Source: Octopus bimaculoides (Eukaryota). From it: a DNA stretch of 37,258 nucleotides. Of the stretch, positions 12,600 to 36,411 are shown piece by piece (position 1 is the first letter of the stretch; every line of letters starts with the position of its first letter). The notes under the pieces were generated by a model. The model ran no database searches. It saw only the letters and a list, made by a program, of their open reading frames with translations, and was not told the origin of the DNA. The position numbers were made by a program, and so were the translations under genes. The stretch spans positions 33,760,025 to 33,797,282 of the forward strand of contig NC_068989.1 of the NCBI RefSeq assembly GCF_001194135.2, read 5' to 3'.

Positions 12600-14240
12600 C
12601 CAAAAAGTATTCTTTGGAAAACAACTGCAGAATACCAATGAAACTTCAAATAGTCAGTCACTACCTGTTCCTTGGAGGTACCATCAAAGGAAAGAAAGAA
12701 AGAACAAAAGGAAATTTCGATAGAAGTAACTTTTTTTATGGCAAAAGAAATTAAATTCCCATATTTATCAATTCAAAATGTACAAGCAAAAGTAGAAAAA
12801 GTGCTGAATACAATAAAAGTGTAGGTACAATAAAAGTGTAAAGTGACGAAAATATGATTCATTGAAAGGAATTTTTGACATCACAAAGGAAAACAGTGAA
12901 TGGCTGTGCAGTGAAGATAGAAGGTTATATTATCTTCAAATTGAAAGCAAGGCTCAGGTTGGGTATGGAACTGAAAAGGTGGCCAGTTCCAAAACTATCC
13001 ATCCATCCAAAAGAAGAAAAGTGTCCTTAATGCCAACTTCAACCAGAGCAACTCCAGTGTCATCGTTAACATCTGAAGCAGAGACTGAAAGGGAATATCA
13101 AGAGTCTGAGAAATCAGATGAAGAATTCACGCAAACAAGGAAGAAGTTTAGCAAAACTGGAACTGTAACCAAGTTAGTAATATCTTCCAAGCTTTCAACC
13201 CAAAAAGCAGCAATAGTTTGTCGCCAATTATCTCAAGATGGAATCAAAGGAGCTGTTAAACTAAAAAAGAAAATGAAGAAAACACTATATTTAGAAAACT
13301 GGTCATTGCATTTTGATGGTAAGTGTATTGATGACCAAGAATACCAAGTGCTAGTTTTAAAGAATGAACAGAGAGAAGCTAAGTTAGAAGCACTCCAATT
13401 ACCAAACGGAAAAGCCAATACTGTTGTGAAAGGAATAACAGCTGTTTTAGATGAATGCAATCTATGGAACTGTGTAAAGATGATTGTCACTGATACGAGT
13501 GTGATCACTGGGAAAAGAAATGACATTGTCATTCAGTTGCAAAGACTGTTTGCTCAAAAGGGTTTGAGAGAACTGCAATTTATTGGTTGTCAGCATCATA
13601 TCCTTGATAGAGTTCTTCGTGTTGTAATGGTTAACGAACTTGGAGAAAAAAAATCATCTCCCAATATTGAATAAACATTCATTCCAGAGCTTCTAAGTAA
13701 TTACAAGAAGCTCCAATCTAATTTCAACAATGGTGCAGAAAAGATTACTGAATCAGCAAGATGACATGAAATTTCTATTTCATTTGACCAGAGTTTTTCG
13801 TTTCTTTGAAGAAACCGGAAAATTTCCTATTGGAAAGTCTCAAAATATACCCAACTTAATTAATGCAAGATGGAATTCTCGAGCAATACTAGCTCTTTTG
13901 GCATTACTTCTTCTACCACCAAAAAAGAGTTTTGCTTCTCAATGTTTGTTGATTCATCTCTTACAGCTGAGCAGATTTTTGGTTTACTGACCAAATGTTC
14001 AGTGCACATGATTATCAGAAGTTATGTGGTAGCCTGCAAGTTCATAAAAAAGCATTGAACTCTGTTAAAAACTTTGGAGTAAAGAACCATCAGAACTGGA
14101 AATCCCCAGAACGAAATCACAGTGCAGAACAGGCAATCAAGTGCCTTCAAAATTTTTATGATGTTTGTTAAAAGAAGGAGAAACTTCAGCTTCGATTTAT
14201 TTTATCTAACAAGACATTAATTCTTTATGTTTAAAAATTT
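12600..14240 (+). mobile_element. hATm-like DDE transposase pseudogene
   Basis: ORF 12862-13674 contains LHFDGK (first D), VTDT.VITGK (second D region) and FIGCQHHILDRVL (CxxH-type motif). Frameshifted continuations give PNLINARWNSRAILALLA and NHSAEQAIK (catalytic E). Upstream remnants read LPVPWRYH and KEIKFPYLSIQNV. Confidence 0.75.
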
Positions 14241-16147: not shown

Positions 16148-16298
16148 TTAATAAACCAACATAAAAGCTATAATGAGAAGACTGTCTATAGAACTGATGT
16201 TCTTATAAGCATATAAAAGCCGAAATCCCACTTCTAGCATGTCTTTCCTTGCATGCTGACAACCTTGCAATGTTTTCAAATGGAATGGTTCCAGAAGT
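16148..16298 (-). CDS. mtnK: Methylthioribose kinase-like gene, terminal coding exon
   Basis: Acceptor tctttctgtgatttttcag, phase 2. Encodes (R)LLEPFHLKTLQGCQHARKDMLEVGFRLLYAYKNISSIDSLLIIAFMLVY-stop, in frame with exon 23234-23144. Confidence 0.75.
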
Positions 16299-17044
16299 CT
16301 GAAAAATCACAGAAAGATATGGTCTTTTATTATAATTATCAAAGGAACAGAATTGTATCAGATTTCATTAACAAGGGATCCTCCACATAATCGCTAGAAA
16401 TAACAATCACACCCTACAAAAACGAAAAGATCGCATTATATAAGGTGCAAGATACAGTATGTAAAAAAAATGATAGCCTGGCAATGGATGGAACATCTTT
16501 CCTCATAAGTCTGTCTGATCAGATTTAACCTGGGACTAAATAATAACAATTTTGGTTTCATATTGATTGAGTTTCAGAAAAAAATACTCAAGTAGTTTTA
16601 ATATATACAGTGAGAATTAATTACAATATATATTTGGGAAGAAAAGACTAGTTCATTAACCTGTTTTAATGTTTTCAGCAAATAGGAGTATGTTTTAATC
16701 TTATTGCAAAACAAACTTCAATTAATCAAACTCATTTATTATAACATATTAAAATAAGCAAACTGGGCTAACATTGTATTTCTCTCACATGTAATTATGT
16801 CTTTAATGCTCACTACATTAAATATATTTGGTCATGAAGATGTTAATTCTGAGTAATTAAACTTCATTTTTCTTTTTTTAAAAAAAAGTCAAGTATTTAG
16901 TTGACATTACTTCACCATCACAAGGTTCTAAGTTTGATCTCACTGTATGGCACCTTAGAAAAGTGTCTTACTATAGCCTTGTTTTGACTAATGCCCTGTG
17001 GAAGCCCATTGGATAGGACTGTTTTATATATATATATATATGCA

Positions 17045-17445
17045 CAGGCATGTCTGTGTGGCCGAGGTCGACTTTACCTTTCATCCTTTCGGGGTCGATA
17101 AATTAAGTACCAGTTACGCACTGAGGTCGATGTAATCGACTTAATCCGTTTGTCTGTCCTTGTTTGTCCCCTCTATGTTTAGCCCCTTGTGGGCAATAAA
17201 GAAATAAGAAGCTTGCTTCTCAATCACATGGTTCCAGGTTCAGTCCCACTATGTGTTATCTTGGGTAAATGTCTTCCATAGCCTAGTGCTGACCAAAGCC
17301 TTGTGAGTGGATTTGGTAGACGGAAACTGAATGAAGCTCATATATATGTGTGTCTGTCCCCGCACGACTGCTTGACAACTGATATTGGTGTGTTTGTGTC
17401 CACGTAACTTAACGGTTCAGCAGAAGAGACAGAGTAAGTGCTCAT
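17045..17445 (+). mobile_element. tRNA-derived SINE whose head is interrupted by a second SINE fragment (about 17062-17205)
   Basis: The head GGCATGTCTGTGTGG / TAAGAAGCTTGCTTC is split by CCGAGGTCGACTTTACCTTTCATCCTTTCGGGGTCGATAAATTAAGTACCAG...AATAAAGAAA, which is the same central domain as the SINE at 30177-30390. Confidence 0.8.
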
Positions 17446-17499
17446 TCTTAAAAAAAAAAAGTACTGTGATCAATTCATTTGACTAAAGATATGTCTGGT

Positions 17500-17760
17500 A
17501 ATTATTCCATCAATCACTTTTGCCAAACTGCTAAGTTATAGGGACGTAAACACTAACACTGGTTGGGGGGGACAAACACAGATACAAAGACACACACACA
17601 TGCATAATAGGTTTCTTTAAGTTTCTCTCTACCAAGTCCACTCACAAAGCTTTGGTTGGCCCAAGGCTACAGTAGAAGATATTTGCCCTATAGTAGAAGA
17701 TAGGACTGAACCTGGAGCCACATGGTTGTGAAGCAAGCTTCTTACCACACAGCCCTACCT
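17500..17760 (-). mobile_element. tRNA-derived SINE, inverted relative to the 17206-17445 copy
   Basis: Minus reading GGGCTGTGTGGTAAGAAGCTTGCTTCACAACCATGTGGCTCCAGGTTCAGTCC...CCAAAGCTTTGTGAGTGGACTTGGTAGA. Confidence 0.85.
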
Positions 17761-17770
17761 GTACGTTATA

Positions 17771-18002
17771 CAAGGTGTTCAAAAAGTCTCTCCGCAGTAA
17801 GTATTGAATGGTTTTTGAGCAATTCTTGTACACTGATCCTTTACTTGCTCCCCAGAAAAAGTCTGGCAGTGTTAAATCAGGTGATCTTGGTGGCCAAAGT
17901 CCCTTTGAAATAATCCATTCGCCAAAAAACTCTTGAAGTAGTGCCATGATGATGCGCAGGATGCAAAAAAACTCACTGTGGAGAGAGTTTTTGAACACCC
18001 CG
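17771..18002 (-). mobile_element. Internally deleted Tc1/mariner derivative (232 bp)
   Basis: TIRs CAAGGTGTTCAAAAAGTCTCTCCGCAGT and reverse-complement CGGGGTGTTCAAAAACTCTCTCCACAGT, with TA on the left. The interior encodes FFGEWIISKGLWPPRSPDLTLPDFFWG, a transposase C-terminal motif. Confidence 0.85.
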
Positions 18003-18005
18003 TTT

Positions 18006-18040
<35 letters not shown>

Positions 18041-18054
18041 TTATACACATACAT

Positions 18055-18660
18055 ATATCATCATCTTTTAACATCCGTTTTCCATGTTGGCTTGGGTTGG
18101 ACCGTTTGACAGGAGCTGACCCACTAAAGAGCTGCCCAGGCTTCATGCCTGTTTTGGCACAGTTTCTACAGCTGGATGCCCTTCCTAATGCCAACCACTT
18201 TATAGTGTACTGGGTGCTTTTACACATCACTGGCATGAGTGCGTTTACATGGTACTAGTATGAGTGCTTTTTACGTGACACCAGTTCCTGTGAACCTACA
18301 AGGTTTGGAATACTCAGCTGGAGAGGGATGCCTGGTACAGTCTGTATGCAAAGACAACCATGCTTTTACTTAACTTGACGTGTCTTTTCAAGCACAGCAA
18401 CACATCATCCCCTCTGTGAGTCCCAACATCTGTAGATCTTTTCTCACCACTTCATCCCATGCTTTCCTGGTTGTGAAGCACGGCCAAGTATTTCTTCTGC
18501 TGTGTACTCACAGAAAGATTGCATCAGTGGTGCTTCTCCCTGGCACAAATCCAAACTGCATCTCGTTTAGGCTGACTCTCTTCTTTATTAATTGGGCTAT
18601 GACCCTTTCTGCAACTTTCATCACTTCCACATGTTCCCTCTACAATTTGAGATCAGCAGC
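18055..18660 (-). mobile_element. Internally deleted RTE LINE 3' piece plus SINE-like tail
   Basis: An RT N-terminal piece (18485-18640, repeated at about 19510-19655) is fused directly to the C-terminal ...KAWDEVVRKDLQMLGLTE, followed by the GGAAGGGCATCCAGC tail at 18055-18350. Confidence 0.75.
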
Positions 18661-18669
18661 TGTCATCAT

Positions 18670-21300
18670 TCATATGCATTACATGGCTGTACCTGTGCAG
18701 TCTTCTCTTTTGCACGCTATATCTGATTCTTTGTATACCCAGTTTTTCTCTCAAGTCACTTTATCATCAGTTGTATATGCACACTGACATTACCCATCCA
18801 TCAGAGCATACTGGTTTCATTTCTTTGAAGCCTTCACATATCCTCAGTAGTCACAGCCCATGTCTCACTGCCATGTAGCATAGCTGTTCATACACAGGCA
18901 TCATAACAATCTGCCTTTCACTCTGAGGGAGAGGCCCTTTGTTACAAACAGAGGTAGTAGCTCTCTGAACTTTGCCCAGCATATTCTTATTCTAGTAGCT
19001 ATGCTTTCAGAACAACCTCCCCCATTACTAACTTGGTCACCTAAGTAACAGAAACTGTCTACTACTTCTAAGGAGCTCCCCTGACATTTGAGAGAGTCTA
19101 TTTTTTGTACATTCCTGGTGTTTATTGTACCTGCACATCTGTCACATGTAAAGGCTACTTTCTCTGTTAGTCTTCCAATGATGCCATTACAGCTCTTATT
19201 TGTCCATAGCTTGCACTGGGTACACCTTATTGAGTTCCTCCCAACAAAGCCATCTCCCTGAAGGGATCTGTGATTTGTCTGTTTTCCTACTTACCAATAC
19301 TCTTTGCTAAATTATCTCTAGGGCCCTTTGATTCCAGTCTGTGCTTCCATACCTGAAATTTCTTCTCTAGTTTTGGTAGTGATTCAGCAATAAGAATGAG
19401 GTCATTAGCCTAGAGGAGCTCCAAAGGACAACCAGTCTTACATTCTTCAGTTATATAATAAAGAAGAGGGGGCTAAGAACTGATCCTTACCAGAGACAGG
19501 TTTGTTTTTGGCCAAGTATTTCTTCTGCAATGTCCTCACTGAAAGGTTGCATCAGTGGTGCTTCTCCCTGGCACAAATCCAAACTGCATCTCATCTATGC
19601 TGAATCTCTTCCTTATTAATTGAGCTATGACCCTTTCAGCAACTTTCATCACCTGGCCCAGCAATTTGATGCCTCTGTTATTATTTCTGTCCAGCCATCA
19701 CCCTTGCCTTTGTAGTGGTTGACTACAATTCTGCTACACCAATCATTAGGTATGACTCCCTCGTGGACAACCTGATTAACTATGTGGGTGACCAAATCAT
19801 ATCCCACTCCACCAGATGTTTTAAGCATTTCAGTGCTGATACCTGCTGGGTTGGAGGCTTTCCGTTTTCATATTCTTAATTGCTTTATCCACTAAGCTAC
19901 TGTTGATTCAGATAGCTGGCCCTTCTGTTGGGTCCACATTATGCATTCTCTACATTTCGCAATCTTTCATAGTGGCACTTCCAAGACTTCAAAGAATCAC
20001 TAATTGCAAATGAGCCATCATCCATGTGAAGACATTTCTCTCCTACCACTTCATGATTTTCTGACACACTGTTTTGCAATCCTAAACACTTCAGGCGTCT
20101 GGTCCTCACGTTATAAAACATTGGCAAACTTCCTCGTTTCTGCTTCTCCCCTGACTAAGTATACCTCCCTTCTAGCTACCTGATATAGATCTCTGTACCA
20201 TCTGTGTCCAGACCTTCCATCTCTGCTTTCAGGCCTGTTTCTTCACTTTAATGGTCTTGTCTACAACATCATTCCACCACCACATCACCCTAGGTCTGGT
20301 TGGGACTTTGCATCAGCCACAGATTTGGTCTGTGACACTCAGCAAGCTGTCTCACAAAAACTCCCAGTTGCCCTTTATGTTACAAGTCTGTAGTTCCTCT
20401 TTCTCTCAATTTAAGTGCCCCTAAATTTCTGATCATTTAGAGGATCCTTAAGCTTCCAAATTCTTTTCCAGATTGATCTACTTCTTGAAATTTTAGAATG
20501 AAGTCTAAAGTCACTAATAACTAATCTATACTTGTGGAATGGGTACATTCTTCACCAGAGAAGGTTTTTGCATTTCTAAGCAACCATGCATCTCACTTTC
20601 TGGTGAGAATGTAATCAGTCTGACAAGTATGGTCACCTGATTGATAGATTAGGTGACTGGTTAGCTTCCTGCAGTTAGTGTTGCAGATCATTAGGTTATT
20701 TGCATCACAGAACTCCAGTAGCCTTGTTTCCTGCTCGTTTCAGGAACCAATTCCATGGTCCCCATGTACACCATTGAAGATACCTAGCTGTTGCCCAACA
20801 TGTCCATTGAAATCACCAGCCATGAAGATGAGGTCATTGTCATTTGTCTTTGAGGTAACCTGCAGGAGAATACCATGAAAGCAGTCCTTTTGTTCATTTG
20901 GCACACACTGGGACGGTGGAGGATAGGCAGAGATAATTGTTACTGTGCTACTCTGAAAGACTAGCTTAAGCTCAAGTTCTCTATTGCACACCCTGACTAC
21001 CTGAATGACCTTATCAATCTATTTCTCTGTGAGAAGTATAGCCACACCACCTACTTCATCACTGTTACTTTCCTGGAAGATTTTATACCTATATGTCTTG
21101 CCCATAAGGAACCTAGCTGATGCTCCCCTCCACCTTACTTCCTGAATGCAGCAAACATCAGCACACCTCTGTTAAAGCATCTTAACAATCTTGCCAAACC
21201 TACTTTTCAATGTGACTGCATTGACAGTACCAAATCTGAGGAAGTGAAAAGGGACGTAGGAGGGAACATGCAAAGGGGTGGGGTGGCATTCAGCATAAGT
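18670..21300 (-). mobile_element. Near full-length decayed RTE-clade LINE (AP endonuclease, RT, PHD-like Cys insert) in the last mtnK-like intron
   Basis: Minus readings include VTIISAYPP, LIFMAGDFNGHVG, SWKCHYERLRNVEN, DEMQFGFVPGRSTTDA, VGRNSIRCTQCKLWTNKSCNGIIGRLTEKVAFTCDRCAG and LEVVDSFCYLGDQVSNGGGCSES. Part of the RT core is deleted at about 19500. Confidence 0.9.
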
Positions 21301-22014
21301 GCAAGGAAATAGATGGTTTGTTAATTGACTAAATAAGTAATGCTGTCTCCTTTTGATGCATACAGTAATATGGATGAGACCACTGGTGGGAAGAGCTATG
21401 AGAGCCTTCTGGTACGGTGGAGAGATTTCCAGTATAGGTGATGGGTGTGGGTATAAGTGGTGGGGGTTGGAATGGAGGGGCACATTGTGAATAAGGAAGG
21501 GTAGAAAGATTGCTCCTTTCTTAGCTACAACAGAAATAAAAAAAAAGTCAAGGAGGGAAAATATAAACCTTGAAGGGAGGGTGCATATTTAATGAGTGAC
21601 AAAAAATTACGATAACAATAGTTTAGCTTAAATTAAATTACAAGTGGGTTAGTATTTTATAAGGTAGAAATGTAAATTGATGTATGATCAAGGCAAAGAA
21701 AAGGCACATTTAGTTGGATATGATACATATGGCAGAGAGCAAGCAATGCATATTGAAGAGATCTGCATGTACAGAAGGATTTGTATAAAGGTAGCAACAA
21801 GAAGAAGGAAATGAAAAGAGAAAAGGTTACCACCAGAAATGGCCATCAAGACAGAGATATGAGGAAGCAGCTATGCTAGCTTCCAGGGAATGGACAGTAG
21901 TAAACATCATGAATAAAGAAGGGCAGAAAGAGTACTCTATAACAGAAATAAAGAGACAGAGGGAGAACAGAAATCAGAGAGGGAGAAATGTAAATATATA
22001 TATATAAAGCATAT

Positions 22015-22400
22015 ATAAGCTGAGTAGCTCATTATTGCCAGAAAATTTTCGCAATAGAATACCTTTATTTCAATCTTTCTTTCTTCCATGTCTTCCCTGA
22101 TGGATAAACCTCTTGATCAGGACAGATTTCTGCATTATTTGGGGTAATTTACAATGTTCCAGTAAACAAATTTTTTGTTGTTCCATCTTGTAGGTAGATG
22201 TAAATTTTTTTCTCTTCTTTCCTATTCTTGAACATCCAACATAGAGCTGACCATGGGTGAGTAGGGCTCTTTAAGGTGTAAACCAACAACTAAAACTGTT
22301 TGCCCTTGTGATTTGTTGATGGTCATGGCAAAACTAAGACACACTCAAGATTGAAGTTGTTTGAATTGAAATAGAACATAATCTCCTGAGTCTGTGCAAA
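22015..22400 (-). mobile_element. Helitron 3' fragment (PIF1-family helicase C-terminus and decayed 3' end)
   Basis: Minus reading FQFKQLQS*VCLSFAMTINKSQGQTVLVVGLHLKEP then frameshifted THGQLYVGCSRIG matches helicase motifs V/VI. Confidence 0.85.
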
Positions 22401-23143
22401 GGAGGCTCTTGTATCCTTATTATCTAATCAATGCACCCTATGCTCAGGTATCTCCTGAGATTGTGCAATGGACACTTGTGTTCACATATCAAGTCTATTC
22501 ATTTTGTGTTTGGGTGTCTCCTGAGCTTGCTGCTGATACTTTGTGAGGGTTTTTAACTCTGTTGTCCTAATGAAATTCCTTACTTGTATACATACATGCG
22601 CAAAGACAGGAAGATACACACACACACATACACTCAATATGAGTGATATACATATACAGAGAGAGTGTGGCAAATATATATATAAAGAGGGAGAAAGTTT
22701 ACAATGAGAAAAGCATAAAAGACAAAGAGAGACAGATAGAAAGAGAGGATCTTTTCTGTTGCTGTCACAGATTTTGAAATTTTAAAATTAAGTGAAAATT
22801 TTCAAATTTGGTATGTATGCACATATTTTTAGTCACTAAGGGACATGCTCAAGTGGTTAAGGTCAAGCAAATCTGTGGTATTGAGCAGAATATTTGCTAT
22901 AATAATATTTCTGCTTCAACCACCCAACACTGAATCTATCTAAAATGTAATGGAAAATAGGTTAGTTTCAAAACATTGATGTCCAGGTCACAAAAGCAAA
23001 GTTTGAAGCAAATAGTAGTCATTTCCTTTGATTTTGAGATAGAAGCAAATAGGAAATAACACTTACTGACCAAAGTCAAAAAAATAAATAAATAAATAAA
23101 AATTTTGTTACACAATGTAATTAGTAATTGACTTGGAACTCAC

Positions 23144-23234
23144 CGCTTAATAATTTCACATCCAGTGAATCCAGCAACCTCAGACCAAAATTTCTGATCT
23201 GATTTCAGCTTCATTAATTCACTGTACTTTAATC
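23144..23234 (-). CDS. mtnK: Methylthioribose kinase-like gene, internal exon (twin-Arg motif region)
   Basis: Acceptor tttatttttttatttcag, donor gtgagt, 91 nt, phase 1 to phase 2. Encodes (G)LKYSELMKLKSDQKFWSEVAGFTGCEIIK(R), compared with remembered MtnK EEA.GFAGCELIRR. Confidence 0.85.
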
Positions 23235-23399
23235 CTGAAATAAAAAATAAATGTTACAACCAATGCAGTGCATTTTAAAGTTTGTCTTCTGGGTTTTGCT
23301 GCTTATTTCCTTTTTTCAATAATAAACGTCCAATGGAATAAGTTTTGCTTAAGCAATTGTTGTTGTTGTTGCTGATTAAGCCCAGGTAGATTCTTATGA

Positions 23400-23780
23400 A
23401 GCAGATGAACAGTGAGTGGTACATTGAGTCAAACAGACTAGAGAAGCGATTAGGAGGAAAAGATCAAACAAGAATCTAAAAACAATCCAATTCGCCATAA
23501 TGTATGGGAACACACTCTTTTGGCAACAATCAAACAATTGGCAATTTGGGCTGATTAGTGATCCCCACCATCAACTGTTTAGTACAGATCTGGTGCCCTC
23601 CTATTTTGATTCAATAAAAGATAGTCTTTTGGGACAACAATTTGATGATACAGACAAGATGAAAGTGGTGATGAAGTAGGCATAAGAATGCAACCTTGAA
23701 TTTTTTCTAAGAGGATCAATGGTGCAACTACATTGCTTGTGATTGAGATTGTTGAGTAATACCTTTGTATAGAGGACAGT
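23400..23780 (+). mobile_element. Old mariner transposase C-terminal relic
   Basis: PHH...STDLVPSYF and LLGQQFDDTDKMKVVM...EFFLRG resemble the PHPPYSPDLAPSDF...L.G..F pattern. Confidence 0.5.
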
Positions 23781-23889
23781 CTACCAGCATGTACAATTTG
23801 AACATCATCATCATCATCATTTAATGTCCATTTTCCATGCCAATTAATAGAAAACTGAGTCCACTTATAAATTATTTTTGTTATAACTC

Positions 23890-25440
23890 TTGTGCATGCT
23901 TACCGTTGCTCAAGAAATTACTAACTGGTTCCATAGAAGAAGAATTATATAACTTACAGGGAGAAGGAAAATCTATTATCAGAAAACTTGGAGAGGAATT
24001 TTTTATGGAGACTTGGTATCTCCATTACTTTATGTGATTACATTGATTCTTTGACAAGCATACTGAAAAAAAATCCAAACTTGCTTATAAGCTTGCTAAG
24101 ACTAGGGAGAAAAATCCTCTGCTACATATGGATGGCCTGAAACTATATACTATAAATGAAAAAGACCTAGATTCTGTTAACACTAAGAATATTTAGCAAG
24201 GATATTGGTATGCAGTTTGTAGTGAATAAGTGTGGAGTTTTAATTACAGAGAGAGGTTGAAAGATTAAATCTGAGAGTAAAAAGATACAATATATTGCTC
24301 AAAAAGAATGAAAGAAAGAAGTACTTAGGGTTGTTGCAGGATAATAAGTTAATGGAAAGGTGCTTGAAAAAAAAAAAACTAAATAGAGGTAATATCAAGG
24401 CAATTAATGTGGACCATGCTGATATTGAGATACTCTGCTCCTGGACTAAGACATAGCTGCAGGAATTAGATAGAACAACTAGGAAGCTACTCACAATACA
24501 CAACAAGTACCATACTAAAAGTAATATCAGGCTCTACACACCAGGAAGGGAGCAAACGTTTGTTAATAACAGAAGATACCATCAATACTGCAATTTTTAG
24601 TTTGGAAAACTATGTTGTGGATAGTAAAAAAGAATATCTGCAGAAAGAAATATCAAAGAAGTCACTAAAACAGAAAGAACAAGAGAACAAATAGCTGGAA
24701 AGACAATCAACTCTATGACCAATTCATGCAACAAACCAAGGTTTGTTAACAGTGAAGAATGCTGGTTGAGGCTGACAGAAAGAAACCTGAAACAAGAAAC
24801 TGATTCTCTGATTACAACCACTCAGGGTAAACCCATTAGGACAAATTTGAGAAAGACAGAGATTGATAAATCTCAGAGAGCAAATGCAGAATATGGAAAA
24901 AAATGGACGAAGGTATTTCCTAAGTGAGTGCAGTAAACTAGCTCAAAATGAGTGTAAGTACAGGCATGACTATGTCAGTAAAAGGGTGCACTGGGATGTT
25001 AGCCAAGTTTGTGGATTCAAGGTGTCAAAAAAGTGATATGAATACACAGTGGAGAGTGTGATGGTAAATGATAATTACAAGATTTTATAATATTTCTTCA
25101 GAGAGACTGAAATAAGAAGACCAAATATGATTGTAGAAGACAGAAAGAACAGTGTAAGATCATTGAATTCGCAATATCATATGATTGGAGTAGAGTGAAT
25201 ATCAAGAAAACTAAGAAATGCTAGGACTGAGCTAGAAAGATGAAGATGATACTTGTTCCTGTGGTAATTGGTGTACTTGGTACAACACCCAAACTGCTAC
25301 CTTGAATGATATTGGAACTGCTACTTTGAAGGATGCTAGAATTGAGACATGTGTTGTCAACCTGCAGAAAAGTGGCATTCTGTATTCTTGAGATTTTACG
25401 AGACTTGTCACCAAAGCTTAGGATAACATTGCTGCTAATA
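23890..25440 (+). mobile_element. R4/Dong-clade non-LTR retrotransposon relic (RT and restriction-like endonuclease)
   Basis: Readings GIFYGDLVSPLLYVI, LLHMDGLKLY, IFSKDIGMQF, ELDRTTRKLLT, LKQETDSLI, SECSKLAQ.E.KYRHD.V, RRPNMIV, IIEFAI and ILVPVVIGVLG; many frameshifts. Confidence 0.8.
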
Positions 25441-25868
25441 AAATTTGCAAGCAATAGCTTTTGAATGATGCTGATGATGGAGGTCATGATGATAGTCAGC
25501 AGCAGTGTCATCATCATTATCATCATACAAAAATGATCACATGCTAATTTAGTCAGCATAAATTGATCCTGAGGTTTAGAATGTTATCATGAGATTTAAA
25601 TTTCCATAAATCGTAAAGATTCTTGCAGAATATAGGCTAGCACTTTCTACTGGTTGACAGTACAGTCCTTTTGAAAAAATACCTTGGAGGCTGTTTGTTT
25701 CACTTGAGATAGACAGAGCTTCTTTTATTATTCTCATCACCATAAATGCAGTTAGTCAGTGACTAGTCAACAACAATATTGCTCATCAAATAAGATATAG
25801 AATAACTAAATATGATTCTTCTGCTAAAATTTGAAAGTGGCATTGCAAAGAATCAAGCAAGTTATCAA

Positions 25869-25871
<3 letters not shown>

Positions 25872-25932
<61 letters not shown>

Positions 25933-25962
25933 ACACACGTGTGTGCGTGCGTGTGTGTGTGT
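25872..25962. repeat. (GT)n microsatellite
   Basis: About 29 perfect GT units at 25872-25930 plus an imperfect extension. Confidence 0.95.
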
Positions 25963-26003
25963 GAAGTGCATAAATTTGGTGAGTAACCCACACCAACACC
26001 TAC

Positions 26004-26166
26004 CTGAAATCTTCATGAATTCAATCAAACATTGGCTGAACTGACTACTGATGTCTGGCTGGTCAAAGTGCTCAAGATGGTAGTAAAAGAATGTAATGTA
26101 GTTAACAAGAAGACATGCCATATCATATGATACTGGGCCAATGTGGGAAAATTCAAAGTTAGTCAG
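26004..26166 (-). CDS. mtnK: Methylthioribose kinase-like gene, internal exon (Mg-binding DxE region, here NxE)
   Basis: Acceptor ctctatattttgcag, donor gtaggt, 163 nt, phase 0 to phase 1. Encodes LTNFEFSHIGPVSYDMACLLVNYITFFYYHLEHFDQPDISSQFSQCLIEFMKIS(G), compared with MtnK VIDPEFAFYGP.GFD.G...ANL. Confidence 0.88.
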
Positions 26167-26703
26167 CTGCAAAATATAGAGTAAGTATGGCATTAGCTCA
26201 CATTGAAAAAATGAACATGGAATGTTACAATTCACCAGTTGGGTCTGATAAAAATTTACATTATAAAATGGTTTTATTAGTTTAACATACATGTACACAT
26301 GCATGTGTGTGTATGTGTATGACTATATATATATATATATATATATNNNNNNNNNNNNNNNNNNNNNNNNNNNNNNNNNNNNNNNNNNNNNNNNNNNNNN
26401 NNNNNNNNNNNNNNNNNNNNNNNNNNNNNNNNNNNNNNNNNNNNNNNNNNNNNNNNNNNNNNNNNNNNNNNNNNNNNNNNNNNNNNNNNNNNNNNNNNNN
26501 NNNNNNNNNNNNNNNNNNNNNNNNNNNNNATATATTGGCTAAACTGGCAATATGACCATCCCCAAGTACAACAACATATATATATATACTTATGTATATA
26601 CATATGTACATATGAAATATAAATGCAACAAACAATAAAAAACACAACAGGAGGGAAAATGTTTAACAAATACAGTAAGATTAATGCTCTAATGGGAAGA
26701 GAG

Positions 26704-26747
26704 TCTTAACATTTTAACATTTTGAACATTAGTCCTTCATCAAAAGA
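26704..26747 (-). ncRNA. Decayed minimal type I hammerhead-ribozyme motif (Penelope-associated type)
   Basis: Minus reading TCTT-TTGATGA-A-GGAC-TAAT-GTTC-AAAA-TGTTAAAATGT-T-AAGA. Stems I (TCTT/AAGA) and II (GGAC/GTTC) can pair; the core has decayed from CUGAUGA/GAAA. Confidence 0.4.
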
Positions 26748-26814
26748 AAGAGAAAAGAATAGAGTGAGTGAGAAAGTCATTTTCTGTAAGCAGATTGATG
26801 AACTTCTACAATTC

Positions 26815-27550
26815 ACTCTGGATCAAAATGCAGCTCAAAGGTTGCCATCTCAACAACAGTGATAAAATGGCAACCTTTGAGCTGCATTTTCCTCTTGGGA
26901 AAGAGATGGAAGCCTGCAGATGCTAAATCTGGTGAATAGGTCAGGTGCAGAAGTGATACCATGTTGTTTTTAGCAAGAAACTCACAAGTAACAGGGTGCA
27001 CTTTCATCATGAGGTATCCAATTATTCACGCACCACAGATCCAGTCACTTTCACCAAATAGCTTCCCTCAAATGCTTCAAAATGTTGCAGTAGAACAACA
27101 TTTTGACAGTCTGGCCCTGAGGGATGAATTCTCAATGCACAATACTACATTTCTAGGCATGATGTTCATGGCAAGTCTTCCAGATTGCTCATCATCTTCC
27201 AGGGACATCCTTCTGCTTTTGAAGTACCCATGCTACCCAAAACATAGCTTACAACCCATTGTGTCATCACTGTATGCTTGCCAAAGCATGTTCAATGTCT
27301 CTGTAGCAGGTTTCCCAAGTTTAATGCAAAATTTCATGTTGGCTCTTTGTTCCTGTCCATGACAAAATCACAGACTACAGCATATATGTGATCACAAAAA
27401 GACAAATTTCACAACTTGCGAAGTAAACACAGCAATGTCACTTGGCACACTGCCGCATGAAGGTCACTGCTAGCTCTCACTGTACATACAGCCATGTGCT
27501 GCCATCTGTTGGTGTGCTACAGAATTAGTCAAGGAACTTTTTGATACCAG
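26815..27550 (-). mobile_element. Internally deleted mariner element
   Basis: Minus readings MKFCIKLGKPATETLNMLWQAY, SLEDDEQSGR, EFIPQGQTV and FLAKNNMVSLLHLTYSPDLASAGFHLFPK; one TIR-like end (ATCAAAAAGTTCCTTGACTAATT) at about 27525-27548. Confidence 0.85.
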
Positions 27551-27801
27551 GTAAAGAAGAAAAATAAAAAAGATAGAAAATAGATAGGCAGTTAGTAACC
27601 AGATGAGCATGCAGTTGTATGGTGGGAGATAAGAAGGGAGGAGAGATGGCTATTTATGTGCAAGAATAAGAGTGTTTCTGTGTCTGGAAGTGGGAATATG
27701 GTTGGGTTGAGTGCTATAGTGATTTTGTAGGGTGGGTGTATTTGTGTAGATGTTTGCAAGTGTGAAATATAGTGGTGTTGAACAGGGAAGTGTGAGGTAC
27801 T

Positions 27802-27818
27802 GGTGTGTGTGTGTGTGT

Positions 27819-27863
<45 letters not shown>

Positions 27864-27870
27864 CACACAC
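27802..27870. repeat. (GT)n immediately followed by (CA)n: self-complementary compound microsatellite
   Basis: GTGTGTGTGTGTGTGT-CTG-CACACACA... read directly. Confidence 0.9.
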
Positions 27871-27879
27871 TTGAATCAA

Positions 27880-28480
27880 GCATACATGGTTACTTTGGCA
27901 GCTGTGATTCGTATCAACTCTTCAGTTTTTCTTCAGCTGTTTGTCTCTGAAACAAACTTAAACTTTTTAATTCTCTTCTCTCCTCATCCTGTATTTTGTG
28001 ACTGAGAATCATGGTGATCTATATTAATAAAAGCTAAATTCTGTCTGTCTGCCTGGGACCCCTGTATCTCAGTCTGCCTTTGTTCTACATAGACATATTA
28101 TACCTTTTTGGAACCAGGATGATCCCGGGATTGAAAATCTGCCCTTCATTTAGTTCTTGAACATCCAGCATTGGGATCTGATTTAAAAGCATTTGGGTTG
28201 CTAGTTCTAGCAGTTTGCTATTTCTTGGCTGATTCATGCCATCTTGTTTGATATTTATCAGATGACATCAGAGATCAATGGGGTGATAAATGACATTCGC
28301 TTTGTAACTTTCATGTTGAGATATAAACTTTGGGACAAATTGGCCAACAGTTGGAATTCAACTTGGGACTGGAATGATTGCATTACAGAATTAATTCTCA
28401 TGTCCTTAACCTCTGATCAAACACCACCGGGGTATATAGTCATTATAGATGTATTATAGTCATGCTATTTAGCTCTCTTT
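27880..28480 (-). mobile_element. Probable Penelope-like element relic (pre-RT region)
   Basis: Minus readings SQVEFQLLANL, KVTKRMSFITP and IILVPK loosely follow the Penelope order L...E..LL..GL.F.P ... IVILPADKG; multiple stops. Confidence 0.4.
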
Positions 28481-30176
28481 AGTTTTGGGCTGCAGACCCA
28501 ATTAACCCTCTGCAGGAGCTAGCTTAAAAGTCCACACAGAGTGTGGCTTATAAGCTAGTTCTGTATAAATCTATTGTTTGTTTCAAAAAGTTGGAGTTCT
28601 TATCAAAGCACACCATAAAACTTTTTTTTGTTTTTGTTTTAGATGATTTCTTTGGATTTACATGAATCTTATGTAGTAGATTACAATAATATTTGAAAAA
28701 TATTTTTCAAGTTTCATTTATTTTGAAATTTTGCCTTTCCCTCTACTTCTTTATTTAAAGAATTTTTTTTATTTGTATGCTTTGAAAAAGTAGATAGTAT
28801 GATTTGGCTAAAGATGTTTTTTCAAAACTTGAAATGAAAAATTTATGTACAGTTACATATATACCAGCAGAACAAGACAAATTATAACTTCATTGATTTT
28901 GTGTATGTAAAGGTAATGCTTATATTTAATTTTACATACAAATTATTGAAAGACAGAGCAGAGACTTTCTTTCTAAAACGTTTATAAAGACTTGCTACTA
29001 GTCTTACCAGAAGCAGATAAAGCTACAGCATTTTTGATACCATATTTCTGTGTGGTTTTCCTATAGCAAATATATTTTTTCTATATACAAACAAAAGAAA
29101 AGCTTTGTGTAGACACATACACAATGAAAGTAGTCAACTTTTATCTTGTGCCATGAAGATGCCTGAAATTGCGTTAACTTCTTTCATTTATTTCAAAAAT
29201 TATATTGAAATTATAAAAAAAAAAATTTTTAATTTCTTTTGCTAAATAATACTGTCTGTGTGTGTGTTTGTGTGTTTTGTGTTTTTGCATGTTTCTTCCT
29301 ATTTATTCTCTTCCAGAAATGGGAAAAAATTATTTTCCATGTTTATAAAATACAGAACAAAATTCTTTTGTTTTAAAGCTTTTGGGGCCCAGAAATGTGC
29401 TGTAAGTCATTTTAAACAAAAGGCTTGTTTGTAGGAGTACATTAATTAAAGCATTTTTGTAATAAAATCAACTATTTTCACAAAATTTAAGGTAGAAACA
29501 AATACATGAATATACAGATAATCTATTGCCACAAAAGTAAGTGCAATAATATTCACAAAACAAAACGGTTCAATGTAGTGGTAAGAAAGCCTATTTCTTC
29601 CCAATAAAACATTAAAATTCTCTCCTCCTGACAGCATATGAATTTATTGTTTTATGAATATTATAGAATTGATGTTTTTTTTAGCTAAGAATCAAATTGG
29701 CAATTAAAATTTAGATAATGGTATAGCCACAGCCATCCAGCTGGAACTAGTAAAAATAGCCTCTGTTGTAGTTTAATCTATGTTACCATATTCAATTTAA
29801 TCTTGATATGAATGCATAGTTGACTGATGAAGAAATTGGCTTCTTAACCACAAAATTCTTATGTTCAATTTTACTGCACATATAGCCTCAGCCCAACTCA
29901 AAATACTGAATGTGAGTGGGTATCATAAAGACATAAATACCTCATGGTATTTAATTACATCCTTTTATGGTCTGAGTTCAAATCATGCTAGTGTCATCTT
30001 TGCTTTTTATCTTTCCAGGATTAATAAAATAAATACAGCCAAATATTAGAACAATCTAATCAATTATAACCCTCCCTCCAAAAATGTTAAAGATTCTTAT
30101 TCCATGTAGTCTACACTACAGTCAGAATAGTGTAATCTGTAGAGCACCAAAACAATGCATTATTATATTTAGTTAT

Positions 30177-30390
30177 AAGGTGGTGAACTGGCAGAATCGT
30201 TAGCATGTCGAGCAAGATGCTTAATAGCATTTCATTCATCTTTTACTTTCTGAGTTCAAATTCCACCGAGGTCGACTTCGCCTTTCATCCTTTTGGGGTT
30301 ATAAATTAAGTACCAGTCAAGTACTCAGTTCGATGTGATCAACTATACCCCTCCCACCAAATTTAAGGTCTTGTGCCTATAGAAGAAAGG
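30177..30390 (+). mobile_element. Full-length tRNA-derived SINE with an 18-bp flanking direct repeat
   Basis: A-box-like TGGCAGAATCG, B-box GAGTTCAAATTC and central GAGGTCGACTTCGCCTTTCATCC. ATTATTATATTTAGTTAT occurs at 30159-30176 and 30391-30408. Confidence 0.88.
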
Positions 30391-30816
30391 ATTATTATAT
30401 TTAGTTATGTCCCTATAAGTCCCAATCTTTCCAGTTGATTTCATCTGATCTCTCAGTAGGACAATAAAAAGAAAAGTACCAGTGGTGTATTAAGATGGAT
30501 TTAATCATCATTTCTCCACTTCCATACATGTGCACACACACACACACACACATTTGTGGTCTTGTGACAATCTTAGAAATAATAATAGTGGTGGTTGTGA
30601 AGGCAGTGCTATTGATAAGGATTCTACAAAAAAATAATTGTGTGTCTCCTTGTTGTAAATGAGTATCACTATCATACAAGTGATATCAATTGTTTCCAAT
30701 CTTCTTCTAAAACATATCGATCACAGGAAGAGCATCTGACCATAAAGCATTTGCTTTAAAAAAACTCTATTTGACCCAAACAAACAAGGAAAAGTGGTTA
30801 TTAAAATGAAGATTAT

Positions 30817-30817
30817 A

Positions 30818-30855
<38 letters not shown>
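30817..30855. repeat. (AC)n microsatellite
   Basis: Direct reading. Confidence 0.95.
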
Positions 30856-30857
<2 letters not shown>

Positions 30858-31448
30858 GGTGCATTCCAGACGTTTTAGGATCTTTTTTTTTTAAGTGAGG
30901 CAGTGATAGTTGTCCTAGATTACTGTAATTTTAGTTTATCATTACTATACATTTAATAAGCTGACCTGGCAACTTTCGTTATTCCAGATTGAAGGAGACA
31001 GCTGTAACAGCAGTTTGAACACATCATGTTAAAACACTGCTTGTCACAGTTGACTAGTTTGAAGAATGTAACTGGGATGTCAATAAAGTTTTGTGTTAAA
31101 CTTGGTAAAAATGCTACAAAAACTTATGAACTGTCCAAGACTAGTTATGGATTAATTTGCATGAGCTGAGCATGTTTTTCACTGGCACAAGAGGCCAAGC
31201 AAAGCAAGTCAACTAGGAAGCCTATGATGATTCCTTTTTCAACTGAAAGGGTATCATCTATACTATTATATGTCCTGGATACCTTCACTTTGGAGAACTT
31301 ACATGGACTGTCACAGCAAGGCTGGAGTGCTACAACAAATGTATTGAAGTCAGAGGATCCTACTTTGAAGGAGATTAGAGTTTTGTACTTCTTTGAAATT
31401 AATAAATATCCCTCTTGAAAAAGTCCCAAAATTTCTGATATCCACTTT
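30854..31448 (+). mobile_element. Internally deleted mariner element
   Basis: Encodes SIKFCVKLGKNATKTYELSKTSYG and HWHKR. Degenerate TIRs AAGGTGCATTCCAGACGTTTTAGGATCTTTT and reverse-complement AAAGTGGATATCAGAAATTTTGGGACTTTT. Confidence 0.7.
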
Positions 31449-31920
31449 CATCATCATCATCATCATCATCATTGTTTAACGTCCGTTTTCCATGCAAGCA
31501 TGGGTTGGATGATTTGATTGAGGACTGACAAACCAGATAGCTACACCAGGCTCCAATCTGATCTGGCAGAGTTTCTATGACTGGATGCCCTTCATAACTC
31601 CAACCACTCTGAGAGTGTAGTGGGTGCTTTTACATACCACCGGCATGAGGGCCAGTCACACGGTACTGGCAATGGCCATGCTCAAGTGATGTTTTTCACA
31701 TGCCACCTGCACAGGAGCCAGTCCAGCGGCACTGGCAATGACCTTGCTCAAATGTTTTTTCACATGCCACCGGCACAAGCACCAGTAAGTAACGTTAGTA
31801 ATGAACACGTTTGAATGATGCTTTTTACGTGCCACCAGCAGAGAAGCCAGTCAGCTGCTCTGGCAATGATCATGCTCGGATGGTGCTGTTAGCACGCCAC
31901 TGGCATGGGTGCCAGTCATC
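31449..31920 (-). mobile_element. SINE/RTE-tail repeat with an internal tandem array (about 60-70-bp units)
   Basis: (CAT)n tail, GGATGCCCTTC motif and repeated CATGCCAC...GCCAGTC...CTGGCAATG..C.TGCTC units at 31625-31880. Confidence 0.8.
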
Positions 31921-32113
31921 AAATTTGCAAATTTGATTTGATTTTGATTTGTATATTAAAAATGAGTGTTGGAATAACCATAAAACAACAAACACTGACT
32001 GAAGAAAGGATTCAGTATGTGTTTAGAGTCAAATATTACCCTCCCCCCCCCCNNNNNNNNNNNNNNNNNNNNNNNNNNNNNNNNNNNNNNNNNNNAAATA
32101 GTATAATATTTAC

Positions 32114-32342
32114 ATAAGCATTATTTGAAGAGGTGAAATAAATGGAATCCAATTGGAGATTTCCATGAATTAAGCATTCCTTGGTAAAATGGAAAACATT
32201 CTTCATGTCTTTTACTGCTGTTGACACAATGGGTTTCTCATTCACTCTTTTAAGGGTTTCGTCTTTTTCAATTAATCTGTTGTTTTTTTGGTATGGTGCC
32301 ACAAATGTAAGCTGTTCCATAATGTCTTGGCGATGATGTGTT
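32114..32342 (-). CDS. mtnK: Methylthioribose kinase-like gene, internal exon (catalytic loop HGD, here HGN); upstream exons not found in the window
   Basis: Acceptor gagttctttctacag, donor gtaaat, 229 nt, phase 2 to phase 0. Encodes THHRQDIMEQLTFVAPYQ...FTKECLIHGNLQLDSIYFTSSNNAY, compared with remembered MtnK ITERLVFTDPF...AETLIHGDLHTGSI. The four exons total 634 nt with one open frame. Confidence 0.88.
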
Positions 32343-32587
32343 CTGTAGAAAGAACTCAGAAAGGTCACTATAATACAGTTAGGGAGCATTCAAAAAGCTA
32401 ACTAAAAATAATTATGTAGCAAGTGAAAAGAAAAATCATGAGCAATAATATTGTTTCCATTTTACCAGCAAATACAGGAGACAACTCTAAATATGCTTCA
32501 ATTTTATTTTGATCTCATTATCATATATTCATTTTCAGTGAATAAATAACTTAAAATAAAGAATAAAGTTAAATTCAAAACAGAATA

Positions 32588-33146
32588 TGAGGTCTGATCA
32601 AAAAGTACCGGGACTGGTGCTATATAAAAAAAATAATTACAGCACATATGAATTCAGTATTTAATCTCCTTTGAAGTAGTCCCCTTCTGAAGCCACACAC
32701 TTAATCTAGCATCATTTCCATTGATGGAAGCATTCCTGAAACTCCTTTTATGGGATAGTGAGTAGCTACCTCATTGCATTCTCTTGGGTTTCCTTCATGT
32801 CATGAAATTTTGTTCCTTTCAAGTGAGATTCTTTCCAAGCTTTGGTTTTGGGGTCATAGGCATAGATCCATGATTTGATACCTGCAATAACCCTTTTCAA
32901 AAAGTTTTTGTCTTCCTTGACACAATGAAATCCTGCACAGTTGAAACCCATTCTTTTTGAGATGACCACATTCTGCACACATCACTTCCAAGCACTACTA
33001 TAAATAACAGAAGTGAGTGAGAATGTTATATCTTTAGTGTGCATGTGCAACAGAGTTCAAGATGAATCTGTGCCAAGTGGCTTCACTCTGCACCCTTTAG
33101 GCCTGTTACAAAAGCGACAGTCCTGGTACTTTTTGATCAAACCTCG
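32588..33146 (-). mobile_element. Internally deleted mariner element (559 bp) with intact ends
   Basis: TIRs TGAGGTCTGATCAAAAAGTACCGGGACTG and reverse-complement CGAGGTTTGATCAAAAAGTACCAGGACTG, with TA on both sides. The interior encodes NFLKRVIAGIKSWIYAYDPKTK. Confidence 0.9.
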
Positions 33147-33921
33147 TATTCTCTAAAATAGAAAAGAAAATTTCTACTTTCTGTTTTCCATGAAAATTTA
33201 AGTTTCTACACTTACTATTCTAACATTTGTTAGTTGGAAGATTTATTAACAGAGAAGTGTAAATGGTAAACATAAGGAAGCTTTTGTTTTAGGAAATAGT
33301 TTTCACACTATACCATATAGAACATCCCCCACCTCTTTTGATAATTGATTATACCCAGTTTCTTTAGAAATAAATTTTCCAAATTTATTAGTAGCTACAC
33401 CTGTTTATATACTAGTCATGAGAATTGCTATGCAGAATGTGAAACTCTTATTTCTAGTTCTTATGTTTTGTATTACTGCAGTTCACTACCAGGGTGGTAA
33501 CACTATAACTATAGTTTTGGTATCATCCACTTGTTGCAAATGGCTGAAGGCAGATGAAAATTTGTTTAGCATTCCATTAAATTTTCTAGGAGTATTTTGC
33601 ATTTAGAATTCAGTTTGTTTATTCATTCACATTGTGCCTTCATTTGTTAGAGAGAGGAGGAGTGAGCTAAGAGTTGGAGAGAGAGTGAAAGAGAGGGAGG
33701 GGTGAGTGAAATAACACATAGCCAGCCAAGAGAATGCAATGAGGTAGCTACTCACTATCATGTGATTAGTGGAAATGAGAGGTGAAGAGAAAGAGAGAAA
33801 TATTTATGATATGAAGAGGGGAATTACATAATTAAAAAGTTTAAAAGTTTGTTAAAATAAAAGAGAGAGAGAGAGAGTGTGTGTGTTTAGCAGAGGGAAA
33901 TTTTAAAATCATATAATATAT

Positions 33922-34337
33922 TGTTACGAACGCCAGCACGCGAAGCACCTCCTCAACACCGAAGGGGGGACTCGCGCACGCGCGAACATTCAACACTCAG
34001 TGAGCTAGCAAAATTCGTCTGTCGGTACAATCCTGACCGATAATAAAGCCCCGGCTGGAGCACGTAACGAAGAACAACACAGGCAAATAGGACGGGGAGG
34101 AAGAAACAACACGAAGACCATGCGTTGGGTAACTTTTTCTTTTTCTTTACATAACATCACAGAATACATTTAAAACATTAGAATAGAGCATTACATAATA
34201 ACAATTCCAATACATGGCATAACAATTCAATAACGTTGACAAAGTTTCCAAACAATTATAAGCTTTCCAATCATTTTTACATCGCAAAGTTCGTGTCTCA
34301 AGTTTCATTTGACAACAAAGTTCTTCTGCTTCTTTCT
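33922..34337. mobile_element. CpG-rich LTR-like insertion truncated by an assembly gap
   Basis: Abrupt rise in CpG starting at TGTTACG (33922), a typical LTR terminus; near-inverted CGTAACG at 34063 and AATAAA at about 34042. Confidence 0.35.
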
Positions 34338-34710
34338 NNNNNNNNNNNNNNNNNNNNNNNNNNNNNNNNNNNNNNNNNNNNNNNNNNNNNNNNNNNNNNN
34401 NNNNNNNNNNNNNNNNNNNNNNNNNNNNNNNNNNNNNNNNNNNNNNNNNNNNNNNNNNNNNNNNNNNNNNNNNNNNNNNNNNNNNNNNNNNNNNNNNNNN
34501 NNNNNNNNNNNNNNNNNNNNNNNNNNNNNNNNNNNNNNNNNNNNNNNNNNNNNNNNNNNNNNNNNNNNNNNNNNNNNNNNNNNNNNNNNNNNNNNNNNNN
34601 NNNNNNNNNNNNNNNNNNNNNNNNNNNNNNNNNNNNNNNNNNNNNTGCTACCCTACCCCCTGCCAAGATGGGTCGGTCGGTACATGATTCCTATGCTGCC
34701 TTTTTTTAAC

Positions 34711-34744
34711 TTTCGCTGACCTTTCGCTGACCTTTCGCTGACCT
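34711..34744. repeat. 11-bp tandem repeat (TTTCGCTGACC)x3
   Basis: TGACCT at 34717, 34728 and 34739, separated by TTCGC. Confidence 0.9.
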
Positions 34745-35960: not shown

Positions 35961-36067
35961 TTATAAACAATTATACACATACATGCACAATTTCATGTAT
36001 GTATATTTATAAATGCATACAAATCTAGAAACGTGTGAGTAAGTGTATGAATGTGTAGGAGTGTATA

Positions 36068-36275: not shown

Positions 36276-36376
36276 TNNNNNNNNNNNNNNNNNNNNNNNN
36301 NNNNNNNNNNNNNNNNNNNNNNNNNNNNNNNNNNNNNNNNNNNNNNNNNNNNNNNNNNNNNNNNNNNNNNNNNNNN

Positions 36377-36411
<35 letters not shown>

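Follow-up and report, generated by a model that had tools for sequence, protein, structure and literature searches.

A methylthioribose kinase-like gene of Octopus bimaculoides as a candidate pseudokinase preserved among cephalopods

The active site of 5-methylthioribose kinase (MtnK/MTK, EC 2.7.1.100) has been described from the structure of Arabidopsis MTK (PMC2194712). The aspartate of the HGD motif polarises O1 of methylthioribose (MTR), and this motif is described as strictly conserved. Both acidic residues of the DxE motif bind Mg, and the phenylalanine that follows them contacts MTR. The RR motif is also strictly conserved and its first arginine binds O2/O3 of MTR, while the GxGNxN loop (G-loop) anchors the nucleotide (PMC2194712). 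In this work, we describe the MtnK-like gene LOC106882578 of Octopus bimaculoides, of which the last four coding exons lie on the minus strand of a stretch of 37,258 nucleotides of contig NC_068989.1 (assembly GCF_001194135.2, positions 33,760,025 to 33,797,282 of the forward strand), referred to as the window. The cephalopod protein is probably a preserved non-catalytic relative of MtnK that has been kept for a non-catalytic role of a remodelled cleft.

The O. bimaculoides protein exhibits HGN, NFEF, KR, and NDGQFS at the sites of HGD, DxE, RR, and GxGNxN, respectively. The preliminary description of the window had read the first three as HGNLQLDSI, TNFEF, and GCEIIKR, and these are located on the minus strand at 32141-32167, 26149-26163, and 23143-23163 (the end arginine codon of GCEIIKR is split CG/A by the final intron). 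Asn242 of HGN, where the family residue is aspartate, is encoded by AAT at 32159-32161 (minus strand) in exon 5. Asn260, which replaces the Mg-binding aspartate of DxE, is encoded by AAC at 26158-26160 (minus strand) in exon 6. Lys341, which replaces the MTR-contacting first arginine of RR, is encoded by AAG at 23146-23148 (minus strand) in exon 7. The NDGQFS loop is encoded in exon 2, which is outside the window.

The loss of the HGD aspartate is shared by the cephalopods that were sampled. O. bimaculoides, O. sinensis, O. vulgaris, and Argonauta hians all exhibit HGN, asparagine at the first position of DxE, and KR. Sepia pharaonis exhibits HGN, glycine at the first position of DxE, and RR, and the same combination is found in five Sepia-type RNA sequencing (RNA-seq) assemblies, where the glycine codon is GGT. 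One further decapod transcript exhibits HGN and RR with aspartate (GAT) at the first position of DxE. A contig from a sister octopus (about 90% nucleotide identity), which covers neither DxE nor RR, exhibits HGS (AGT), so the former catalytic position 242 is not strictly constrained. In this contig (Logan SRR11869391), the serine codon AGT stands against AAT at 32159-32161, and exon 5 carries an in-frame insertion of 12 nucleotides. Every cephalopod sequence that reaches the G-loop has it in degenerate form, with HSGAFF in Sepia against NDGQFS in octopods; one decapod transcript and the sister-octopus contig do not cover it.

The non-cephalopod animals sampled (scallops, oyster, limpet, abalone, chiton, brachiopod, annelid, sea urchin, and amphioxus) exhibit HGD, aspartate at the first position of DxE, and RR, and all three motifs are canonical in nine of nine such animals in the alignment. 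The G-loop is kept in eight of the nine, and the chiton model is without the N-terminal segment that holds it. Among the eight animals with this segment, the loop is GDGNLN in seven and TGNLN in Patella. A total of 107 positions are nearly invariant in eight non-cephalopod animals; cephalopods keep 34 of them in all sequences and 30 in some, and they lose 43 in all. The losses concentrate on the phosphotransfer machinery, namely the catalytic aspartate, one Mg ligand, and the nucleotide-positioning loop. Lys74 of strand beta3, Glu95 of helix alphaC, Glu262, and Phe263 are invariant in cephalopods.

The change from RR to KR is weak evidence for a loss of function because a sea-cucumber homologue that retains HGD also exhibits KR; RR itself is retained in decapods. 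Variation of RR was also observed in other non-cephalopod proteins that retain HGD: SK in a gastropod-like Logan transcript and KW in an unidentified sequence, besides the KR of the sea cucumber. It may be a sign that, in other invertebrates, the family has diversified in substrate or function.

A search that took scallop MtnK as its seed retrieved orthologues from many molluscs and from other phyla, and no canonical cephalopod copy was among them. The neighbour-joining tree unites the cephalopod proteins in a single clade with 200 of 200 bootstraps, on a long stem that is nested among lophotrochozoan sequences. Most simply read, the cephalopods have one orthologue, and its changes arose on the coleoid stem. 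Non-cephalopod MtnK-like proteins are 45-53% identical to each other across phyla, whereas the octopus protein is 22-28% identical to them.

The assignment to the MtnK family that had been proposed for this gene is supported by profile, by sequence comparison with solved structures, and by fold. TIGR01767 (S-methyl-5-thioribose kinase) is the only strong family match in the profile search. It matches the 210-residue peptide encoded in the window with E = 1.5e-17 (model positions 173-397 of 401) and the full protein with E = 1.3e-19 (model positions 27-397 of 401). Chance similarity is excluded by the first of these values and by the match of the peptide to the Argonauta orthologue (E = 9e-87). 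The TIGR01767 scores are 70.6 bits for O. bimaculoides, 71.3 bits for Argonauta, and 94-96 bits for Sepia, and those of scallop, oyster, urchin, and amphioxus are 258-282 bits. The O. bimaculoides protein is thus below the curated equivalog cut-off of 275 bits.

Among solved structures, A. thaliana MTK (2pyw) and B. subtilis MtnK (2olc) match best by sequence. The AlphaFold2 model of the full protein has a predicted local distance difference test score (pLDDT) of 83 and a predicted template-modelling score (pTM) of 0.87. The top Foldseek match of this model is 2pyw with a template-modelling score (TM-score) of 0.81/0.76, followed by 13 B. subtilis MtnK entries (12 crystal chains and the integrative model 9a5i); PsiK and choline/ethanolamine kinases are far lower in the ranking. 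A word-indexed protein search with the 210-residue peptide returned one genomic open reading frame (ORF) only, and the orthologues surfaced in the exhaustive representative search.

The gene had also been described as preserved, and the ratio of nonsynonymous to synonymous substitution rates (dN/dS, omega) of 0.15-0.20 sets it apart from near-neutral sequence. By the Nei-Gojobori method, the comparison of O. bimaculoides with Argonauta over 386 codons gives dN 0.278, dS 1.41, and omega 0.197 (Fisher P = 4e-30). The comparison of a Sepia-type transcript with another decapod over 250 codons, which was computed from two transcript contigs, gives dN 0.095, dS 0.648, and omega 0.147 (Fisher P = 9e-21). 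The N (ATP-binding) lobe evolves faster than the remainder of the protein. Between the octopods, omega is 0.43 for the N-lobe half, and the C-terminal half, which is encoded in the window, has a proportion of nonsynonymous differences (pN) of 0.20 with saturated synonymous sites. In exon 5, the identity to the sister octopus is 93.9% and omega is 0.31 from 14 changes. The scallop baseline for omega is uninformative, as the two transcripts are 99% identical.

These values bear on whether the locus is a pseudogene in decay or an artefact of annotation, with a reading frame that is open by accident. The Pfam APH model stays below threshold on the O. bimaculoides protein and is too weak to classify it, and one decapod transcript is without exon 3 and has a frameshift. 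The C-lobe is cut short in RefSeq isoform X3, and in the closest comparison the conservation of exon 5 does not significantly exceed that of the flanking intron. All of these would suit decay. However, at least six cephalopod species have intact frames of 391-401 residues, the introns occupy identical positions in both octopod genomes where mapping was possible, and the indels between species are all in frame. The low omega holds between Octopus and Argonauta over the full length despite near-saturated synonymous sites, the fold prediction is a confident one, and full-length intron-free ORFs of 401 residues are found in five independent RNA-seq assemblies of a Sepia-type species. The gene is not a pseudogene given the intact frames, the in-frame indels, the low omega, and the full-length spliced messenger RNA (mRNA), and we reject this explanation as having almost no chance of being correct. 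The decapod transcript that is without exon 3 (127 nucleotides) is Logan SRR27666076, 2-1110; its N- and C-terminal parts are in different frames, and it reflects either non-productive splicing or faulty assembly.

The cephalopod protein falls under the bioinformatic definition of a pseudokinase: the kinase fold is kept, a canonical catalytic residue is missing, and the gene is under purifying selection. The preliminary description had called it a candidate pseudokinase with the catalytic and metal-binding aspartates replaced by asparagine. This status is supported, as the HGD aspartate is absent throughout the sampled coleoids while all other sampled animals have HGD, DxE, and RR; the change from RR to KR carries little weight. 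Mg-ATP-dependent phosphorylation of MTR has, we infer, been lost or drastically reduced.

We propose that the MtnK-like gene evolved fast on the coleoid stem and shed the residues that define MTR-kinase chemistry. In this course of events, the HGD aspartate that polarises the ribose O1 would have become asparagine and the GxGNxN nucleotide loop would have degenerated. The Mg-binding aspartate of DxE would have been freed from constraint, giving asparagine in octopods, glycine in Sepia, and aspartate in one decapod, and the MTR-contacting arginine would have become lysine in octopods. The kinase fold would have been retained together with the beta3 lysine, the alphaC glutamate, the glutamate and phenylalanine of DxEF, and the RR-bearing helix, and purifying selection would have acted on the gene ever since. 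The protein may have survived through its remodelled substrate cleft, by ligand binding or by protein interaction. Within cephalopods, conservation is highest in the former catalytic loop (residues 226-247), the RR helix (residues 326-342), and the alphaC helix, and a non-catalytic role of the cleft is favoured because the loop and the RR helix are among these segments. The role as a 'sensor or scaffold' that was put forward earlier is speculation.

Several points weigh against this explanation. Asparagine at the catalytic position lowers phosphotransfer and need not abolish activity. The H, G, N, L, D246, and S of the catalytic loop are constant from octopus to cuttlefish, and Asp246 (GAT, 32147-32149, minus strand, exon 5) is a new aspartate that replaces glycine at HGN+4 in all cephalopods and in none of the other animals sampled. 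The conserved loop and Asp246 fit a remodelled working site as well as a binding site. Both asparagine codons, AAT and AAC, are one adenosine-to-inosine (A-to-I) edit from aspartate codons, and coleoids recode heavily. For O. bimaculoides itself, the existing RefSeq models are the material that bears on expression, and the full-length spliced transcripts are those of a Sepia-type decapod. The comparison of exon 5 with the sister octopus (6.1% divergence in the exon against 8.5% in the intron, P = 0.34) covers too few sites to reveal constraint.

The protein may accordingly be considered as an enzyme with a remodelled active site that uses another substrate or mechanism, in which, for example, Asp246 or Glu262 replaces the lost aspartates, or which transfers nucleotides. 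Some former 'pseudokinases' do perform nucleotide-transfer chemistry. The catalytic loop ECLIHGNLQxDSI and the helix FWSEVAGFxGCxIIxR are the best conserved parts among cephalopods, and this conservation, the lineage-wide aspartate at HGN+4, the retention of Lys74, Glu95, Glu262, and Phe263, and omega down to 0.15 would all be expected of such an enzyme. However, the loop that positions the ATP phosphates (G-loop) has degenerated and differs between octopods (NDGQFS) and Sepia (HSGAFF). The Mg-ATP ligands are not conserved within the clade, as the G-loop varies, the first position of DxE is asparagine, glycine, or aspartate, and residue 242 is serine in one octopus. Conservation of the catalytic loop is also usual in non-catalytic pseudokinases. 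We regard an enzyme of this kind as unlikely. For the preferred reading of a non-catalytic protein, the cephalopod-invariant change from glycine to aspartate four residues after the lost aspartate shows that the cleft has been remodelled and is not simply decaying.

RNA editing, which the preliminary description had left unconsidered, is another way in which activity could persist. A-to-I editing would restore aspartate in the mRNA (AAU to IAU at 242 and AAC to IAC at 260) and give an active, possibly tissue-gated MTR kinase. Both octopod asparagine codons are one first-position A-to-G change from aspartate codons; the first bases concerned are at window positions 32161 (codon 242) and 26160 (codon 260) on the minus strand. 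Coleoids are known to recode extensively by RNA editing (PMC8382921). A/G differences are also present among Sepia-type transcripts from different runs, and these could be single-nucleotide polymorphisms instead. In the five Sepia-type assemblies, such differences were observed at positions 756 (Gln252, CAA/CAG, two codons after the HGN asparagine) and 311 (Gln104/Arg) of the coding sequence.

Against editing, all six decapod RNA-derived contigs exhibit AAT at codon 242, so the majority of decapod mRNA is unedited there. The glycine codon GGT of Sepia at DxE and the serine codon AGT of one octopus at 242 cannot be edited to aspartate. Nor can editing mend the G-loop, which is degenerate, the W-loop region, or the further 43 family-invariant positions that have been lost. 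The MtnK-like gene is absent from those supplements of the cephalopod editing study that were searched. Restoration of the aspartates by editing is, on this evidence, very improbable. That the protein is not inert in one way or the other, either as a new enzyme or a receptor for a ligand that makes use of the MtnK cleft, with Asp246 as the substitute for the lost catalytic aspartate, or through octopod editing that restores both aspartates, is doubtful but deserves some weight beside the preferred non-catalytic reading.

The gene model was examined exon by exon. LOC106882578 has eight coding exons across about 95 kb. Exons 5-8 are inside the window and exons 1-4 are past its high-coordinate end; N-terminal exons were sought in 32343-37258 of the window and only transposon remnants were found. 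The chain of exons 5-8 (32114-32342, 26004-26166, 23144-23234, and 16148-16298, minus strand) joins into 210 codons without a stop. The peptide is 100% identical to residues 182-391 (the C-terminal part) of RefSeq XP_052826543.1, which is labelled "methylthioribose kinase-like isoform X1". An AG acceptor preceded by a pyrimidine tract is present at each of the four exons, the three internal donors of exons 5-7 are GTAAAT, GTAGGT, and GTGAGT, and the splice phases are compatible, with the first base of exon 5 finishing a codon begun in the upstream exon. The four-exon chain of 210 open codons that had been predicted from the letters is confirmed by these splice sites, phases, and identity. The joining of the exons is likewise upheld, as the chain is that of the RefSeq model and the same junctions occur in spliced cephalopod transcripts.

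Exon 5 (32114..32342, minus strand) encodes residues ~181-257 with the catalytic loop ECLIHGNLQLDSI, as read from the translation and the identity to XP_052826543.1. Exon 6 (26004..26166, minus strand) encodes residues 258-312 with LTNFEF, in which Glu262 and Phe263 are kept. Exon 7 (23144..23234, minus strand) encodes residues 312-342 with KFWSEVAGFTGCEIIK(R). Exon 8 (16148..16298, minus strand) encodes residues 342-391 and ends with the TAA stop at 16148-16150. An alternative terminal coding exon at 13233..13260 (minus strand) substitutes for exon 8 in RefSeq isoform X3 (…IIKR-LTAPLIPS*) and would truncate the C-lobe.

The exon structure is not new, as it is already annotated in RefSeq. The 2015 annotation held this one gene as two models, XP_014788790.1 (the N-terminal part) and XP_014790197.1 ("methylthioribose kinase-like"). 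The latter is the C-terminal 203 residues, which is the exon chain from residue 8. The Argonauta orthologue has the same eight-exon structure. With identical exon structure, the gene spans 14.7 kb in Argonauta and about 95 kb in O. bimaculoides, so the O. bimaculoides introns are massively expanded.

The window is 100% identical, gaps included, to the O. bimaculoides chromosome record CM046609.1 (GCA_001194135.2). It has six runs of N, and the two that had been flagged (32053-32095 and 26347-26529) are both within intron 5 (26167..32113, minus strand). The first begins 19 nucleotides beyond the exon-5 donor and the second stops 180 nucleotides short of the exon-6 acceptor. The exon 5/6 junction (…SSNNAY/LTNFEF…) keeps the spacing from HGD to DxE as in the family. 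It is colinear with Argonauta, where the equivalent intron is 380 nucleotides and there is no extra exon, and with intron-free Sepia-type (cuttlefish) transcripts. The sister-octopus contig spans the position of the first gap and exhibits no coding similarity past the donor. The gaps leave the frame intact because both are in intron 5 and the junction is colinear with Argonauta and the Sepia-type transcripts. An assembly-gap artefact was considered and rejected, as the flagged runs of N are intronic and hide no coding sequence.

The tail-to-tail neighbour of the gene is a BRCT-domain gene at 1-9760 of the window (plus strand). Its O. bimaculoides product of 1743 residues has BRCT_2 and a faint RING-type zinc-finger match, and the gene was also located at 108346-114873 of locus L002 and 21808-24685 of locus L003. 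Synteny is conserved, as the same BRCT-gene neighbour is also present in Argonauta. An intact ORF of 270 residues at 12862-13674 (plus strand) has no Pfam match and overlaps the terminal exon of isoform X3 (13233-13260) in antisense; it may be transposon-derived or an unannotated gene. Transposon remnants occur in the introns and the flank at 36834-36920 (minus strand), 32769-32981 (minus strand), and 7662-9166 (plus strand). Among the remnants are a DDE_3 (Tc1/mariner-type) transposase fragment (E = 5e-6), a second mariner-like fragment with no Pfam match, and reverse-transcriptase-like ORF fragments. A (TG)46 microsatellite at 25872-25963 starts 41 nucleotides downstream of the exon-6 donor, and intron 5 carries a tandem repeat of 2.5 copies of a 66-nucleotide unit at 31628-31786.

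Targeted searches of the literature library used found no paper that pairs methylthioribose kinase with cephalopod or octopus, and the only one found that pairs the enzyme with "pseudokinase" deals with bacterial spore kinases. Although the gene model itself was known before, its lineage-wide pseudoenzyme status appears to be unreported. The protein is named methylthioribose kinase in O. sinensis RefSeq and in UniProt (O. vulgaris), and "mtnK" in Sepia pharaonis. With these database names, reconstructions of cephalopod metabolism would wrongly include the MtnN/MtnK branch of methionine salvage.

The gene would be a clean natural case in which a small-molecule kinase has become a conserved pseudoenzyme in a single animal lineage, with the canonical orthologues of sister molluscs as controls. 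It makes testable why a dead metabolite kinase is kept and whether editing rescues genomically lost catalytic residues. If editing were true, this would be a kinase with catalytic residues written at the RNA level, which could be switched by tissue or temperature. Nothing known is overturned, as pseudokinases are common and the gene model is in RefSeq; only a demonstration of rescue by editing or of a new catalytic activity would raise the interest sharply.

Two systems in which catalytic residues have been lost invite comparison. HER3/ErbB3 is a pseudokinase of the protein kinases in which HRD has become HRN, and it works by dimerising with active paralogues. Both HER3/ErbB3 and the cephalopod protein exhibit the change from aspartate to asparagine in the catalytic loop, keep the kinase fold otherwise conserved, and are maintained by selection. 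Unlike HER3/ErbB3, the cephalopod protein has a small-molecule kinase as its ancestor, and no active cephalopod paralogue was found. The bacterial spore kinases (BSK; CotI/YtaA family) are members of the kinase-like superfamily that also includes choline kinase, APH, and MtnK. Catalytic residues are lost in some BSK, and some subfamilies are reportedly predicted pseudokinases (PMC2860764). Unlike the octopus protein, BSK are bacterial spore-coat proteins from an unrelated branch.

Close relatives are the canonical animal MtnK-like proteins, such as those of Ylistrum balloti (XP_060076671.1), Magallana gigas (XP_011454843.3), Patella vulgata (XP_050404564.1), and S. purpuratus (XP_030835761.1). 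They are orthologous to the octopus protein by phylogeny and have the same length; unlike it, they keep the catalytic motifs. Compared with characterised MTR kinases (2pyw of A. thaliana, 2olc/2pun of B. subtilis), the octopus protein is homologous over its whole length and of similar length. It shares with them the bilobal protein-kinase-like fold (TM-score 0.81 to 2pyw), the beta3 lysine, H-G, the E-F of DxEF, the GF(A/T)GC…R helix, and the C-terminal helices. It differs from them in HGN for HGD, NxE for DxE, KR for RR, and xDGQFS for GxGNxN, in the loss of the W-loop region and the 'PTN' segment, and in the new invariant aspartate at HGN+4. The cephalopod protein descends from the mollusc MtnK-like gene, and it should not be filed as a methylthioribose kinase because it fails on four catalytic sequence features and on the equivalog threshold.

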